A DNA stretch of 64,000 nucleotides from assembly GCA_025558095.1 (NCBI GenBank), contig JAIVFI010000005.1, positions 682,001 through 746,000 on the forward strand. Direction: 5' to 3'. A program made the position numbers and the translations under genes. Numbering within the stretch: position 1 is the stretch's first letter; each line of letters opens with the position of its first letter. Shown one piece after another: positions 56,650-62,855 of the stretch. Origin of the DNA: Hyaloraphidium curvatum SAG 235-1 (taxonomy: Eukaryota; Fungi; Monoblepharomycota). The notes beneath the pieces are model-generated. The model worked only from the letters and a program-made list of their open reading frames with translations. It was not told where the DNA came from and made no database searches.

Positions 56650-59600
56650 ATGAGTTCCCATACCAGACGACAACGTTTGCCCTTCCCGCACGGGGCCGAT
56701 GGGTGAGGTCCGCACGCGTGCCACGTGCCCGTGAGGGCGCAGCGTCGTCCTACGCCGCTTAGCGGTCAGGTTCCAGATGGGCAAAGAGTCCCGGCGTTGG
56801 CACAAAATCCGGCCGCCGCGTGGAATGAAAAAGGATGCCGGATCTATTCGCACATCGCCAAGGACGAGCTCGGCCTCGAGTTCAGGAAGAACACAACCTC
56901 GGACAAGGAGATTGCCGACAAGGACAAGTCGCTTTACCTGCACCGCAGCATCCTGCGACTCGCGCCCTTCGCCTCGTGGGCCCCGCGAGCGCCCGTGGAG
57001 AAAGGTTCCGCTCTCGGAATCCCGGAGGAGCTGGACCTCGCTACCTATTTCCGCCCGGCACCACCCGTCGACGAGGGCAACGCCGTCGGGGACGCGGAGC
57101 CGCCGCCGGCTACGGCTTCCACGACCGCGGAGCTCAAGTTCACGGCGGAGCCGTTGACGCCGGCGCTGAGGCAGGAGTACCTCGACGCGACGCGCAATGG
57201 ACACCTCGCGCAGGCCATGCTGGGAGTGCTGTCGGCGATGGAGGCGGCTGCCGGGCTCGGCGGCAACGAGTTCATGACGCGCGTTGAGGCGGTGTACCGG
57301 ACGACAACGATCGGGGGTCTGGAGCCGCGGCACGGGAACCCGGCCGACGCCGGTGGCCGCTGGGTCTACGGGGACCTGTCCGAGATCGTGGACCCGCGGC
57401 TGCCGACGACCGAGATCTGCGCCAACTGCCCCAAGGGCGACGTGGTGCTGGGCTCCCGCCGCTACTTCCTTAACGCGACCAACAGGATCTTCTTCACCGC
57501 CCTCGACACCACCGCTTTGGACCGGCTTCGAGGTCTGCTGGCCGAGACGACGGTGGGCTCGCCTCCGCCATGGACGCGCTCATGTCTGATCCGCGCACGG
57601 CCGTGTCGCAGGACGAGGCGACCAAGACGGCCATCGGCAACGACATCGCCGTCATTGAGTTCGAGCTGCATTTTGCACGCCCGCGACACGCAGCCCGCCG
57701 ACTTTGACGATCAGCACTGGCCCAAGGCGACTCGCGCCCGCGCCCGCGTGATGGGCAACCTGGTCTTCACGGACGCTGGCAAAACCTGCCCCCTCCTATT
57801 CGTGGGCATCGTGCGCACACTGCCTCTGATGCGTTTCCTGACAGCCCTTTTGCGCCCAGATCGACGGCGACGATGATTGTTGCTGTTGCGACAGCATGTC
57901 TAAGATGATGGGAGGCGGCGAGTGGGATGCCGACGTCGCCAAGCGAGCTCTGCTCCTTCACCGCCGCATCCAGCTCGAGCACCTTCGGCTGGAACTCGCA
58001 GCATTCCGCCCGACCTTGGTCATCGGCTTGGGGTCAAACATGGCCCGGATGCTGTGCTCCACGAGCGGGAGCCCTCACCTGCCCAAGCGCTCCCTTCCGT
58101 TTGCGACCGGCGGCATCCTCAACGTGGAATTCAACGTGCGCGGCTCCGATCCCGCAACCGCCTTCCAGCTCGCGGTCGCGCCGCACCCTGTGGCATGCGC
58201 AATGCTGCCCTCCCACCTGGCCGACTCGGTCACCGCCCTCTGCCTCCTCCCGAACCCTGCCAAGGCGGAGGCCGGAGCGGTGTTCGACCCGTCGTCGTAC
58301 TCGGCGGTCGCCGCGCTGGACGCCGCGTCTCGGCTCGCGGCGCGCACTATCGTCCCTGAGGTCTTCACTTTCTGGCCCGAGCGGGGCACCGAGGGCGTCA
58401 CCCACCTGGAGTCGCTCCCCGCGGCTCACCAACGGATCCCTGAGTCGTTCATACCCAGCTGGCTGATATCGAGCTGCGCCAACCTCTTCACGTCGGGCTT
58501 CAAGGAAAAGTTCAAGGACCGGTTCCAGGCCTACCTTGAGATCTTCGCTGCGAATGGCCTCCGCGACCTCGCCTTCGGGAAGTCCCGCACGTACCTGGAT
58601 CGGGCCACCCGCGCGCGGATTGGGCAAGATGCGCCCGCACCGCCGGCAGGCCTCCTGGGCGCGCTGGCCTACCGGCTGCGGTGTCTGCTGGTCCCGCGGT
58701 CCGGTCAGGCGGCGTCTGCTGCGGTCGCCGAGGATGGGGATGAGGTTGCCGTGCTGCTCGAGGACGACGGGCAGGACGCGGTGGCGCTGACGCCGCGAGA
58801 GAGCGTCGCCGCCATCTACGGCCTGAAGCCGCAGGTTGCGGATATCGTCAAGGATCTGGATGGCCTCGGGCGGCATTTTCTGGAACGTTCGTCGGACAGG
58901 ACGCGCGCCAGCACCCAGTCCCTCCTGGATGCCGCGCGCGACCTTCTCTTTGGAGCTCCGGGCGGTGCCGCGCGCCTCCGTCCGATCGCCGACATCCGCC
59001 GCGACGCCGGGCTCGGCGAGGTCGCGTTGACGGACCTGAAGCTCGACGATAAGCTGGGATTTGTCCGGAGCGCTGTCGTGGCTGGGGACCTGAACCAGCG
59101 GCTCACGCCGAGGCTCCATGCGGGCGATCGCTTCTCCAACCTGGACAACGCGGTGTTTGGGAAGTGGCTTGCAGCGTACGTCGGCTTCCTGCTGCGCCAA
59201 GACGAGGGCGGGAAGGACGAGTTCGGTGCTTCCGTGTCGTTTGGCCTGGCGGACTCCCTGGACCACTGCAGGATCCCTGGGGCGGCAGACGGTAGGGTTC
59301 TGGCCAAGGTCAAGAAATGTCTCCGGGACCAGGATCCCGGCGTGAAACTCGAAGGAGGCGACGTGTCCACCCTCCTCCGCAACTATGCCTTGCCAGGCGC
59401 CGTGGCGCTTGGCGCCGGCTCTCCCCGAGATCGACTTCATCGTGAATCGAGCAACTACATCGCGTCGAACGGTGTCGCCACCAGGGTGCTCTTTGAGCAC
59501 CCGCATCATACCAAGGGCTTCAACCGGCTGGGTGGGGCGCGCAGCGCAGTCAAGGTAATGGCATGCTCGCAGCCAAGTTGATGGTCCGCTGACGGTCGAC

Positions 59601-61526
59601 CCACCTTCCTCGCAGCCGGGTCACGGTGATCTGCCTCAAGATGCCAAGTGGGTGGCTAGTTGCGTCGGGTGCCAAGGAGGAAGGGGCTGCGATCGCAAGT
59701 ATCCGAGATGCGGGTGAGCTTTGCCCCAGTCAATTGGTGCTCATTTCCTCCTAATCCTTAACTATCTACTCACCCGTAGCGCCTGCACCAACGCGAATCG
59801 GCAGTGCATCTACAAGATGCCTGTGTGCGAGTGCTGCAACAAGGCGCGTCGCGTCTGCGACGGCAGAATGCCCTCGTGCGGGTAGGTTTCCGTTGTTGAC
59901 ACCTCCTCGCACCTCGTGTTGCTGACTGACACGCTTTCGAACATCAGGCAGTGCACGTATGCAGGGGACACCTGCTCGTGGGAGTTCTTGACAGCCAAAG
60001 GAAGGCGGAAGGCCGGCGACGCCGAGGACTTTGAATGGATCTCCCACGCGCACCACCGCACCATCCCCGAGCTCGCCGGCTGGCACGTTCCCGGCGCCGG
60101 CGCCTCGTCGACGCACGCCTTCATGCGTGGCGTGGTGCTCGAGGGCGAACTCTGCACCAGCTCGGATCCCGGCCCCCGGAACGGCGTCTTTTTCCAGAAG
60201 ATGAAGCAGGGCGAGAAGGACGTCGTCTATTACTTCGACCACAAGCCGAGCGTCGAGACGGCCACCGACGTCGCCTACAACATCGTCGCGGCCTCGGTCG
60301 ACCCGGGTGCCAAGGGCGACACGATTTCGGTCACGGCCTTTGCTGTGGGGAAGGACGGCAAGCTCGAGGAGCTGACGCTCCACCGCTTGTTCCGGCCGCT
60401 GTCGTCGAAAGGGTACAGGGCGAAGGACGAGGCGGCGCGGCCCGACGAGTGGTGGACGGAGCACGAGGACCTGTCGACGCTGATGGCCGAGGTGTCGAAG
60501 TCGCCGTACCCCGTCGACGGCATGCTCGCAGGTGGGCATTGACGAAGCTGCTCTGGCTCGTGGTCGCTCACCCGCTCCTATATTCGCCGATCCGCCTCGC
60601 AGCGTCTGCGTTCCTCAACCACGCCGGCTCGCTCCTCGACCACGCGCAGAGCCGCCACGCCCAGCTCGCCAAGGAGTACCGCTTCCGCGAGAACCAGGCC
60701 CGCCAGGCGGCCATGAAGAACTGGATTCTCGCGGCCGGGGAAGCGGTGTGGCGCCAAAAGGTCTACCTGGAGGCCTTCAACGCCCACGTGGAGAAGGAGC
60801 GGCCGAAGCTCGGCGAGCCGCCGCCTGACCGCGACCACGCGCGCAAGATCGAGGAGGGTGCGCACGCAGCGGGCAGGGACGCGGTGGCGGCGATCGAACG
60901 GATCCCCAACCCCATCGTCCTGTGCGGTGCCGGCCAGGGCACGGGCTCCCGCATGCCGTACGTCGGCAGCATCGCCGATTCTCGCGGCCGGGGAAGCGGT
61001 GTGGCGCCAAAAGGTCTACCTGGAGGCCTTCAACGCCCACGTGGAGAAGGAGCGGCCGAAGCTCGGCGAGCCGCCGCCTGACCGCGACCACGCGCGCAAG
61101 ATCGAGGAGGGTGCGCACGCAGCGGGCAGGGACGCGGTGGCGGCGATCGAACGGATCCCCAACCCCATCGTCCTGTGCGGTGCCGGCCAGGGCACGGGCT
61201 CCCGCATGCCGTACGTCGGCAGCATCGCCGAGTTCCTCTCCCGCCACTTTCTCGTCTTCTTGCTGGGCGAGTACTTTACCTCCCAGCTGTGCCCGACCTG
61301 CCTCGCCAAGCTCGAGCCCAACCCGCTCAAGCGCGGCGACGTCGTGCACAAGCGCTGTGCGACCTGCAAGCGCAACCCCGACCGCGACGGCTTCGACGGC
61401 GAGCTGGTTCTCAACAAGAACCGCTCCGCCACCCTCTGCCTCGTCAGGATCTTCCTTCACATCGTCGCCACTGGCGACCGGCCCGCAGTCTTCACCCATC
61501 GGGCCGCCTCTCGCAACGCCGGATAA
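56650..61526 (+). pseudogene. Fanzor1 (TnpB family) fusion: UDG-like domain + 2x Zn2Cys6 + RuvC; 8 exons, ~1396 aa when repaired
   Basis: Exons 56650-56702 (tentative), 56763-57552, 57612-57810, 57860-59554, 59616-59713, 59780-59881, 59948-60531, 60603-61526. RuvC-I AASVDPG (D at 60300), RuvC-II GEYFTSQLCPTC (E at 61269), second CxxC, RuvC-III NKNRSA, terminal GDRPAVF. Disrupted by a +1 at ~57671-57674 and a 253-bp duplication. Confidence 0.85.
60724..61229. repeat. 253-bp tandem duplication inside the last Fanzor exon
   Basis: Units start at 60724 and 60977 with GA microhomology; the length is not a multiple of 3. Confidence 0.95.
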
Positions 61527-61673
61527 ACCTACCCGGCACTTATCTGAATGAGTGAGTCTCGCGCCCATAGATGGGGTATCAGGGTGTTGCGAGTTTTTGA
61601 TGGGGGCGGTTAACTGACGGAAAGCACGCCCCCCTCCCCCTTCTTCCTCCCCCGAAGCCATGACATCCGAATG
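61527..61673 (+). ncRNA. Putative Fanzor omegaRNA (scaffold to 61653, guide from the flank)
   Basis: Lies between the Fanzor stop and the element right end. Stems CTCGC/GCGAG enclosing CCCAT-AG-ATGGG, and GGGGGCG(61602-61608)/CGCCCCC(61627-61633). Confidence 0.55.
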
Positions 61674-61682
61674 AGAAGAGGT

Positions 61683-62855
61683 TTATTGGACCCCAAACCG
61701 GCCCATAAGCCGCTGGAAAAGCCCGCCGCTCTTCTTCTTTGGTTCCGCTTTCTCCGCATTCCCACTGTCCTCCTCAACCTCCTTTTTGGCCTTTGGAGAC
61801 GCCGGTGCCGGCTTCGCGGCGGTCGGGCCTACAGCCCGGGCCTTCACGGCCTCGATCAGCTCCAGTCCCTTCTGCTGCCGTGCCAGCATCTCCTCCAGCA
61901 GAGCTCGCTTGTTATCCCCGGCCTGCACTTCGCCCGTGGCCAGGTACGTCGTCCAATCGTCCCACGAGATGCGCGCTTTCCACGCCAGGTCGTACTTTCC
62001 CCGTTCGATGATGCTACGAAGGTCGTCGTCCGAGATCGACGCATCCAGCCTCGCGTAGGCTTCCAGCTTGGCCTTGATGTCGTCCATCGCCTCCTTCCGC
62101 GCGGCAACCTCGCGCGAGATTTCCCACTCGGCCCAGTCGACCCGGGTCTGGTCCGCCTTCCGCTTGTCCTCCAAGGCGTGCTCCAACCGCGTCACCAGCC
62201 GCTCCAAAAAGCGCTCCCGCGTCGACAGCTTCGCTTCCTCCTTCTTTTTGAGGTACCGCGCGTACCAGTCCGGCTCCTTCTTCTGCTGCGAGGCAAGGAG
62301 CCGCAGCCGCACCAGCTCCAGTTCCCGCCGGACCTTGGGCAGGAACTCCAGGGCAAACAGGCTGTGCGTGTCCGTCGGCGAGTCCACGAGCTCGATCAGG
62401 GCGCGCTCGCCCTGGTCGCGCTGCCGGTAGCCCGCGAGGGTGACGCGGGCAAAGTTCTTCTTGCGGTCGCGGTAGCGGAACCGCAGCTCCCCGAGCAGCT
62501 TGGGGACCACGGTCTCTTGTTGCTGCAGGATGGCCGCGGCGCGATGCGCCCGTGAGCAGGATTCCGGCGCCGATCGCGGCGGGCACCCACGTAGACCTTG
62601 TAGCGGAGCGCCCACCGCGCGTAGTCCGTATCGCGCTTCGCCAGCGCGATGGCCTGCCGCCACATGAGCCGTATTAGGGACATCGAGGCGCGCGGCCGGC
62701 GTTCCCACCTTCTCGGCCACCTTCTGGACCTCGCGCGCCTTTGCGTTTGTCGTGATTATCTGCTCGTGCACGACGAGCTGGCCGAGCAGCGTCCGCAGCA
62801 GGTCGCGGCGGTGCAGCGCCGTGCGGCCGAGCTTCCGCATTCGCTGCATCGGCAT
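61683..62855 (-). CDS. MRPL17: Mitochondrial ribosomal protein bL17m with long C-terminal extension (2 introns)
   Basis: RKLGRTALHRRDLLRTL..LVVHEQIITT.AKAREV...AEK/AIALAKR...PKLLGEL..RY..R...ALIELVD. Confidence 0.93.
   Translation of the reverse strand: MPMQRMRKLGRTALHRRDLLRTLLGQLVVHEQIITTNAKAREVQKVAEKVGTPAARLDVPNTAHVAAGHRAGEARYGLRAVGAPLQGLRGCPPRSAPESCSRAHRAAAILQQQETVVPKLLGELRFRYRDRKKNFARVTLAGYRQRDQGERALIELVDSPTDTHSLFALEFLPKVRRELELVRLRLLASQQKKEPDWYARYLKKKEEAKLSTRERFLERLVTRLEHALEDKRKADQTRVDWAEWEISREVAARKEAMDDIKAKLEAYARLDASISDDDLRSIIERGKYDLAWKARISWDDWTTYLATGEVQAGDNKRALLEEMLARQQKGLELIEAVKARAVGPTAAKPAPASPKAKKEVEEDSGNAEKAEPKKKSGGLFQRLMGRFGVQ

Follow-up and report, generated by a model that had tools for sequence, protein, structure and literature searches.

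In the window, a stretch of 64,000 nt from Hyaloraphidium curvatum SAG 235-1, part of a gene for a Fanzor1-like protein lies on the plus strand of contig C5, and a pair of tandem six-cysteine clusters is encoded by two micro-exons of this gene and the start of the exon behind them. We consider it very probable that this module is real, of the Zn2Cys6 type and located inside the Fanzor1 body, much as a first-pass annotation of the window had proposed. The large exon upstream of the module (57896..59554) is open over 553 codons and gave no family match with Pfam; its second half is a helical REC-like part, and at its end the conserved strand TRVLFEH (59480-59500) aligns with the point where REC passes into WED in SpuFz1, the Fanzor1 protein of Spizellomyces. 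Intron 1 (59555..59615; 61 nt, GT..AG, phase 0) leads to micro-exon A (59616..59713), which carries Cys1 to Cys4 of cluster 1 (59661-59711). Behind intron 2 (59714..59779; 66 nt, phase 2) lies micro-exon B (59780..59881), encoding Cys5 and Cys6 of cluster 1 (59784-59807), a linker of six residues and Cys1 to Cys4 of cluster 2 (59826-59879), and behind intron 3 (59882..59947; 66 nt, phase 2) exon C (59948..60531) completes cluster 2 with Cys5 and Cys6 (59952-59975) and continues through the strands FMRGVVLEGEL (60120-60152) to the RuvC-I motif VDPG (60297-60308). Intron 4 (60532..60602; 71 nt, phase 1) and the last coding exon (60603..61526, stop codon at 61524-61526) close the gene.

The translation of micro-exon A ends in WVASCVGCQGGRGCDRKYPRC and that of micro-exon B reads ACTNANRQCIYKMPVCECCNKARRVCDGRMPSC, each being followed by GG/GT, and the translation of exon C opens with QCTYAGDTCSW. 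Cluster 1 thereby has the spacing C-X2-C-X5-C-X6-C-X2-C-X6-C and cluster 2 the spacing C-X2-C-X6-C-X6-C-X2-C-X6-C, and reading the exon translations confirmed the peptides and spacings that had been given for the two clusters. Introns 2 and 3 both start two bases past Cys4 of their cluster (GG/GTGAGC and GG/GTAGGT), so the phase-2 intron claimed at an identical site after the fourth cysteine of both clusters is indeed there. The four-cysteine half-pattern turns up just four times when the 64-kb window is read in all six frames.

Splicing of the module was followed in contigs of the public run X1, which are RNA-like, and in DNA-run contigs of X2 and X3. All four GT..AG joints (59555-59615, 59714-59779, 59882-59947 and 60532-60602) are present in contigs of X1; intron 1 is placed by its sequence and by its joint in two X1 contigs, and the joint of intron 2 was seen in two different X1 contigs, most simply one per copy of the gene pair formed by the window copy and its closest sister. 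At least one joint-bearing X1 contig has the alleles of the sister copy (60034/60035 A>C), and splicing is therefore shown for the near-identical pair rather than allele by allele, with splicing of the window allele itself being probable. A contig of X2 (59692-59969) is unspliced and without differences from the window. Both cysteine motifs are real, expressed coding sequence.

A search of the H. curvatum genome with exon C identified six loci, namely the window locus on C5, a sister copy on C14 (93% identity), a second subfamily on C31, C17 and C8 (48-49%) and a third subfamily on C8 (40%). Both clusters, with 12 of 12 cysteines, are kept at all six loci over protein identities of 40-93%, and at each of them the donor GT stands two bases past Cys4 of either cluster and the acceptors restore C-X2-C, the site and phase of both introns thus being kept throughout. 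The sister copy on C14 has an annotated product, DFJ74DRAFT_668209 (P0149; 2987 amino acids, aa), whose NCBI model splices the module exactly as the first-pass annotation had suggested, and KAI9027716.1 (P0001), a hypothetical protein of H. curvatum with 2449 aa, matches the last exon of the C8 locus exactly. Skipped or unspliced micro-exons, or their absence from sister copies, would have spoken against the module; the joints are all found in RNA-like contigs, and the module is present in every paralogous locus.

For the identity of the module, the profile PF00172 (Zn_clus; gathering cut-off 21 bits) was run on P0149 and P0001, two paralogs annotated in spliced form, as stand-ins for the window module, since the window exons, scanned one by one with Pfam, gave no Zn_clus match because they are too short. 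The spliced paralogs both scored above the cut-off, with 23.1 bits over P0149:2500-2595 and 28.4 bits over P0001:1965-2050, in two stretches each. Scored singly in the paralogs, cluster 2 reached 21.4 and 20.9 bits and cluster 1 stayed below the cut-off at 16.6 and 20.2 bits. Cluster 2 fits the Zn2Cys6 consensus C-X2-C-X6-C-X5-12-C-X2-C-X6-8-C exactly in the window and in all paralogs (X2, X6, X6, X2, X6; the last gap is X7 in P0001), and the second gap of cluster 1 departs from it, being X5 in the window and X4 and X7 in the paralogs. Only the cysteines, the Asp after Cys3 and the Pro before Cys4 are strictly kept among the paralogs. We conclude from these comparisons that cluster 2 is a canonical but divergent Zn2Cys6 domain and that cluster 1 is degenerate, its second gap being variable.

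Zn2Cys6 domains are fungal DNA-binding modules that usually read CGG triplets, and the type is overwhelmingly known as a binder of double-stranded DNA (GAL4, PPR1, HAP1), with a loop between Cys2 and Cys3 that in GAL4-type domains is usually basic and contacts DNA. In the window, these loops are QGGRG (cluster 1) and NKARRV (cluster 2), and in the paralogs KKGK is combined with EAAERD and ETDGNDE with QKKNRV; hence a basic loop is present in at least one of the two clusters of every paralog, though not in both of each: cluster 2 has an acidic loop in the C31/C17/C8 subfamily (EAAERD), and in P0001 it is cluster 1 whose loop is acidic (ETDGNDE). A phmmer search of the module against solved structures gave no significant match, the Zn2Cys6 proteins HAP1, RSC3, PPR1 and LAC9 appearing at E 0.24-0.38 and the top match, likewise non-significant, being a Vav C1 domain (E 0.026). 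With the PF00172 domains of GAL4, PPR1 and HAP1 the module shares the six-cysteine spacing (in cluster 2), the Asp after Cys3, the Pro before Cys4 and the Pfam score. It differs from them in being two tandem clusters six residues apart inside an enzyme, instead of one cluster at the N-terminus of a transcription factor, in the shortened or variable Cys2-Cys3 loop of cluster 1 and in the acidic nature of some loops.

The protein that carries the module was attributed to Fanzor1 by profile, fold and motifs. Profile A1, made from the last exon, was searched against 1.8 billion representatives and yielded 130 proteins, with KAI9027716.1 as the best match, but had no match in PDB, whereas the wider profile A2 (51 family members) matched PpFz1 of Parasitella (9cf0, E 8.9e-15), SpuFz1 (8gkh, E 5e-8), GtFz1 of Guillardia (E 3e-5) and ISDra2 TnpB (E 6e-4). 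In the A2 alignment, the family motif NKDxSA falls on the Asp of RuvC-III in Fz1, and DEYxTSQxCxxC covers the Glu and the zinc finger of Fz1. For P0149:2080-2987, an AlphaFold model had a mean predicted local distance difference test score (pLDDT) of 60.6, with values of 70-94 over most of the RuvC part, and its best Foldseek matches were PpFz1 (E 7.4e-7) and then SpuFz1 (E 1.8e-5). In VIA, SpuFz1 and PpFz1 came first, both with Z 12.1, followed by Cas12 variants with a best Z of ~11; model residues 397-901 were paired with SpuFz1 chain residues 268-633 at a root mean square deviation of 4.3 over 243 aligned residues. Neighbours in the ESM Atlas, by fold and by language-model features, were clusters of the Cas12f1-like_TNB/DUF8286 kind from giant viruses and early-diverging fungi, and Pfam PF07282 scored 17.4 bits, which is below threshold.

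Besides the VDPG of RuvC-I, the window encodes IVLCGAGQG (61167-61193) at the position of RuvC-II, with Gly instead of the canonical Glu, an alternative Glu that precedes the first CxxC by six residues (GEYFTSQLCPTC, 61266-61301), a CxxC-X18-CxxC zinc finger (61290-61367) and, at RuvC-III, NKNRSAT with Asn (61413-61433). DPG at RuvC-I and a Glu shifted to six residues before the CxxC are signatures of Fanzors (PMC10711439, PMC10530073). The strict published Fanzor pattern was not matched, as the gap from Asp to Glu is 212-214 residues here and 120-160 in the published pattern, and RuvC-III has Asn in place of Asp in all six paralogs and in the metagenomic relatives P0002, P0003 and P0006. However, GtFz1 also has Asn at RuvC-III and is active, and the D606N variant of SpuFz1 is more active than the wild type (PMC11423790), indicating that this Asn excludes neither membership of the Fanzors nor activity. 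A dead nuclease, as the Asn and the missing canonical Glu might suggest, was thus rejected, the Glu shift being a Fanzor hallmark and the D-E-N triad being active in GtFz1. Since the triad of Asp (in DPG), alternative Glu and Asn is the same as in GtFz1, the intact paralogs may be active nucleases.

The profile, fold and motif evidence together support that the C-terminal ~830 aa form a Fanzor1-like, TnpB-derived RNA-guided nuclease module, and the Fanzor body assumed in the first-pass annotation is borne out by the A2 profile, Foldseek, VIA, the Atlas neighbours and the signature motifs alike. With SpuFz1 (8GKH), PpFz1 (9CF0) and GtFz1 (9CER) it shares the DPG, the Gly at RuvC-II, the alternative Glu and the CCCC zinc finger, and further traits in common are its occurrence in a fungus, its several copies and a repeat unit whose end lies ~100 nt past the stop codon. 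Unlike these proteins it occupies the C-terminal third of proteins of 2449-2987 aa, and has a Zn2Cys6 pair in its WED-equivalent segment and ~212 residues between DPG and Glu; its omega RNA, TAM and cleavage are putative. The comparison with the D-E-N triad of GtFz1 extends to the Asn of six paralogs and three metagenomic relatives, with activity here being putative, whereas the distance from the second CxxC to the Asn is 17 residues, as opposed to 4-8 in the published pattern.

Within this body, the module had been placed between a REC-like region and RuvC-I, which our analysis supports and narrows down to the equivalent of the second WED segment of SpuFz1. In the P0149 model, the strand TRVLFEH is at residue 400, the zinc module at 440-500 and the RuvC-I Asp at residue 609, while in SpuFz1 the RuvC-I Asp is D383 and the second WED segment spans 268-383 (PMC10432273). 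The zinc module thus falls in the stretch that aligns with SpuFz1 268-383, which is ~97 residues longer here, the VIA placement consisting of first-to-last aligned ranges and not of a residue-level alignment. Because Atlas fold matches cover model residues 83-901, the Fanzor body starts well upstream of the zinc module. In the WED domain of SpuFz1, R291 touches the target-adjacent motif (TAM), Y345 starts unwinding and K312, R315 and R317 contact stem 2 of the omega RNA (PMC10432273). The stretch holding the module thus maps to the TAM-contacting WED segment, but the module itself was modelled at a pLDDT of only 30-50.

Homology with the sister copy (L007, on C14) starts at 56836 with an identity of 92.4% by blastn, and the region 56836..57876 holds the upstream coding exon or exons of a 5'-truncated copy as judged by blastn and by tblastn of paralog open reading frames (ORFs); as the homology begins only here, ~1650 codons are missing. 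Furthermore, the last coding exon contains a perfect tandem duplication of 253 nt (60724..61229, comprising 60724-60976 and 60977-61229) that the sister copy, 97% identical, does not have and that, not being a multiple of three, shifts the frame before RuvC-II and RuvC-III. The X1 contigs 58631-59006 and 60156-60443 have no differences from the window allele, demonstrating that the window copy is transcribed. Since the copy is 5'-truncated and frame-shifted, it is probably a pseudogene, still transcribed and with the module preserved.

It is accordingly rather likely that the module is without function at this locus, which would be a decaying partial duplicate, and that only the full-length paralogs on C14, C8 and C31 matter. 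Besides the missing codons and the broken frame, this is favoured by the seven replacement and no silent substitutions that separate micro-exon A from that of the sister, and by the locus on C17 (L009 5900-8507), which is likewise a frameshifted 3' fragment, of 2.6 kb. On the other hand, the window copy is transcribed with 12 of 12 cysteines and all splice sites intact, and the duplication could conceivably be an assembly artefact, its junction being bridged by one contig of X3 (60949-61231) with only 28 nt on the left, which is suggestive only. Decay would moreover concern this locus only and is compatible with the explanation we offer below for the family. Both partial copies, in the window and on C17, keep the 3' end without the 5' part, a 3'-biased truncation, and they are not retrocopies because introns are retained.

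Our best explanation, to which we give an even chance, is that the module is a divergent Zn2Cys6 pair in the WED-equivalent Fanzor1 segment of a family of giant H. curvatum proteins, where it would act as an accessory binder of nucleic acid. The pair is inserted as ~97 extra residues into this segment, and a nucleic-acid-binding role is most likely because the insertion falls in the part of Fanzor1 where the TAM duplex and omega RNA stem 2 are contacted. Besides RNA guidance, it may in this way provide protein contacts to TAM-adjacent DNA or to the end of the element. The domain type, the TAM-proximal site, the strict conservation of Cys, Asp and Pro and the presence of at least one basic loop per paralog speak for a role with nucleic acid. 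That the module specifically binds DNA near the TAM we regard as possible, if somewhat short of an even prospect. A more far-reaching version, which we consider unlikely, is a giant mobile-element protein made of Fanzor1 with Zn2Cys6 readers in its WED domain, in which targets would be set by a protein and RNA code through an extended or composite TAM, and in which the orphan N-terminal part of ~2000 aa would supply the mobility of an element of ~13.5 kb.

Several observations weigh against reading the module as an accessory nucleic-acid binder in the WED-equivalent segment. They include the features of cluster 1, the acidic loops and the phmmer result described above, as well as the low pLDDT of the module and the coarse nature of the VIA placement. 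Compared with the sister copy, with which the window copy forms the youngest pair, micro-exon A has only replacement substitutions, as stated, which may reflect relaxed constraint on the residues other than cysteine; exon B has five replacement and two silent ones, and in exon C pN is 0.034 and pS 0.154. The nearest relative outside the genome, L012 (an ENA metagenome contig; 519-2015), which also has Asn at RuvC-III, carries a CCHC knuckle (CSGCGSFDHDLRKC) in the corresponding place, between its NRxGGxR and FxRGxxLEGEL strands, and not Zn2Cys6. CCHC knuckles are typically binders of RNA or single-stranded DNA. The acidic loops, the varying loop length of cluster 1, this knuckle and the replacement substitutions of micro-exon A speak in particular against a simple reader of CGG. 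Examined for an omega RNA structure, finally, the conserved 3' tail of the gene yielded just an invariant hairpin; its covariation term is -0.06, which amounts to no covariation because the sequence itself is conserved.

These observations leave room for a rival, doubtful but to be taken seriously, in which the zinc pair serves structure or interaction and does not read sequence; it would stiffen the WED fold, bind the omega RNA or recruit a host protein. Such an insert could tolerate that the loops expected to contact DNA are acidic in some paralogs, that the cluster 1 loop varies between X4, X5 and X7 and that only Cys, Asp and Pro are strictly conserved, and it would agree with the omega RNA contacts of neighbouring SpuFz1 WED residues and with the CCHC knuckle of the relative. 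The FRI insertion of PpFz1, which binds cyclophilin, offers a precedent for a lineage-specific insert with a protein partner (PMC11423790); like the module it is an accessory domain of ~100 aa in a Fanzor1 core, but FRI is situated in RuvC, whereas the H. curvatum insert is a zinc-cluster pair in the WED-equivalent segment. The at least one basic loop of each paralog and the insertion point adjoining the TAM, in a domain type so predominantly known for binding double-stranded DNA, argue for the accessory binder instead. A further parallel is Cas12f, the N-terminal lobe of which carries a zinc-finger insert with a structural or guide-RNA-binding role. There too, a TnpB-family effector has a small zinc module within its WED/REC lobe, but it is prokaryotic, of a different zinc-finger type and has that structural or guide-RNA role.

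The first-pass annotation had further taken the identical intron positions to imply duplication of an exon module. The identical position and phase of the introns do fit a duplication of cluster plus intron, but they are the only features that favour it, as introns 2 and 3 have no residual similarity (119 of 500 shuffles reach their score) and the likeness of the two clusters from exon to exon is explained by the shared codons for Cys, Asp and Pro. A ready-made Zn_clus pair may have been captured instead. The genome has at least 111 uninterrupted Zn_clus matches, and at least 12 host ORFs have two of them in tandem, 45-80 aa apart (for example C35:41043-41303, C35:28125-28361, C16:611926-612165 and C26:525547-525858), so that tandem Zn2Cys6 pairs seem to be common in H. 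curvatum. This frequency and the dissimilarity of introns 2 and 3 make capture a rival to duplication in place. Last, chance cysteine-rich frames or an artefact of the gene model, with the micro-exons being non-coding, would agree with the absence of any ORF-based or exon-by-exon Pfam match in the window itself, but have a negligible probability, being already contradicted by the conservation of cysteine positions, frame and splice sites in six loci, by the spliced contigs, by the independent NCBI gene model and by Pfam scores above the cut-off on spliced proteins.

The Fanzor1 module is part of unusually large proteins. Fz1 proteins mostly have 600-700 aa (PMC11423790), whereas the annotated paralogs have 2449 and 2987 aa instead of the ~600-700 aa of a stand-alone protein and are thus no ordinary Fanzors. 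Their N-terminal 1600-2100 aa had no match in Pfam, NCBIfam, PHROGs, PDB sequences, an Atlas feature search or a word search, and a second structure model, with a pLDDT of 39, was too poor to use. Two candidate motifs in the upstream or N-terminal region, one UDG-like (LFVG...HP) and one PIN/FEN-like, were dropped after the same library, PDB, Atlas and word searches had come back blank. Just before the conserved helix of the large exon, acidic residues and then several cysteines in a row form a conserved stretch (~57860-57895), which reads DGDDDCCCCDS in the window, DGDECCCCD in the C8/C31 subfamily and DDTDDCCCDDCC in P0001. Elsewhere, P0030 and P0033 and their clusters, from ENA metagenomes, are proteins of 1548-1648 aa with a C-terminal Fanzor1-like motif set (LVLCGAGDG / DEYLTSQLCPAC) that nearly fill contigs of 5-6.7 kb; giant fusions of a Fanzor1-like module may be more widespread.

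On C31 (~133550-147040, minus strand) and C8 (319067-332501), the giant gene fills nearly all of a unit of ~13.5 kb, the two copies of which are 94.9% identical. The unit has sharp ends, the 5' end being CGCAAACAGCCAAACC and the 3' end lying ~100 nt past the stop codon, and neither terminal inverted repeats nor a target-site duplication are obvious in the C31 and C8 copies. Because the copies are so similar, sharply bounded and filled by the gene, the unit would fit a large mobile or recently duplicated one.

At the 3' end of the window copy, a conserved tail (61527..61640) extends to the end of sister homology and contains a hairpin, the splice donor GTGAGT (61552) and TTAACTGAC, which resembles a branch site. 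The hairpin pairs GCCGG (61518-61522) with CCGGC (61533-61537) around an N10 loop, encloses the stop codon and is invariant in six of six paralogs. The tail was compared between the window (61552-61640 onward), L007 8160-8300 and the equivalents in L008, L010 and L011: homology from copy to copy stops sharply 100-115 nt past the stop codon, and all paralogs have a donor (GTGAGT or GTACGT) ~25 nt past the stop, behind which come GTTAACYRAC, resembling a branch site, and a pyrimidine tract. At 61551 an X1 contig has a loose end and jumps to the downstream exon of the sister copy. Since the repeat unit ends inside an intron of the 3' untranslated region, each copy depends on its own, different flanking DNA for the acceptor. 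The excised intron would hold the last ~90 nt of the element together with its flank, which is where the guide of a Fanzor would lie. Downstream, an ORF of 390 codons on the minus strand (61683-62855) converges on the Fanzor-like gene; its N-terminus resembles mitochondrial ribosomal protein L17 by sequence reading only.

Among the 130 family representatives, the six-cysteine module was found only in the Hyaloraphidium protein, and in the literature searched no study joins Fanzors with Zn2Cys6, GAL4, binuclear clusters or Hyaloraphidium. We class the H. curvatum protein as a Fanzor1 with an accessory zinc-cluster insert that is fused into a giant protein, with the identity and position of the module being supported and the proposed mechanism plausible. 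Fanzors are eukaryotic RNA-guided nucleases under development for genome editing, and their TAM recognition and natural biology are poorly understood. The two full-length annotated paralogs provide concrete proteins in which the role of the module can be tested. If our explanation is true, a natural Fanzor1 acquired, within its TAM-proximal domain, a DNA-binding domain that is specific to eukaryotes, and became fused to ~2000 aa, which would mean that the Fanzor family can gain accessory domains and fusions and would suggest a way in which target motifs become longer or altered in nature.

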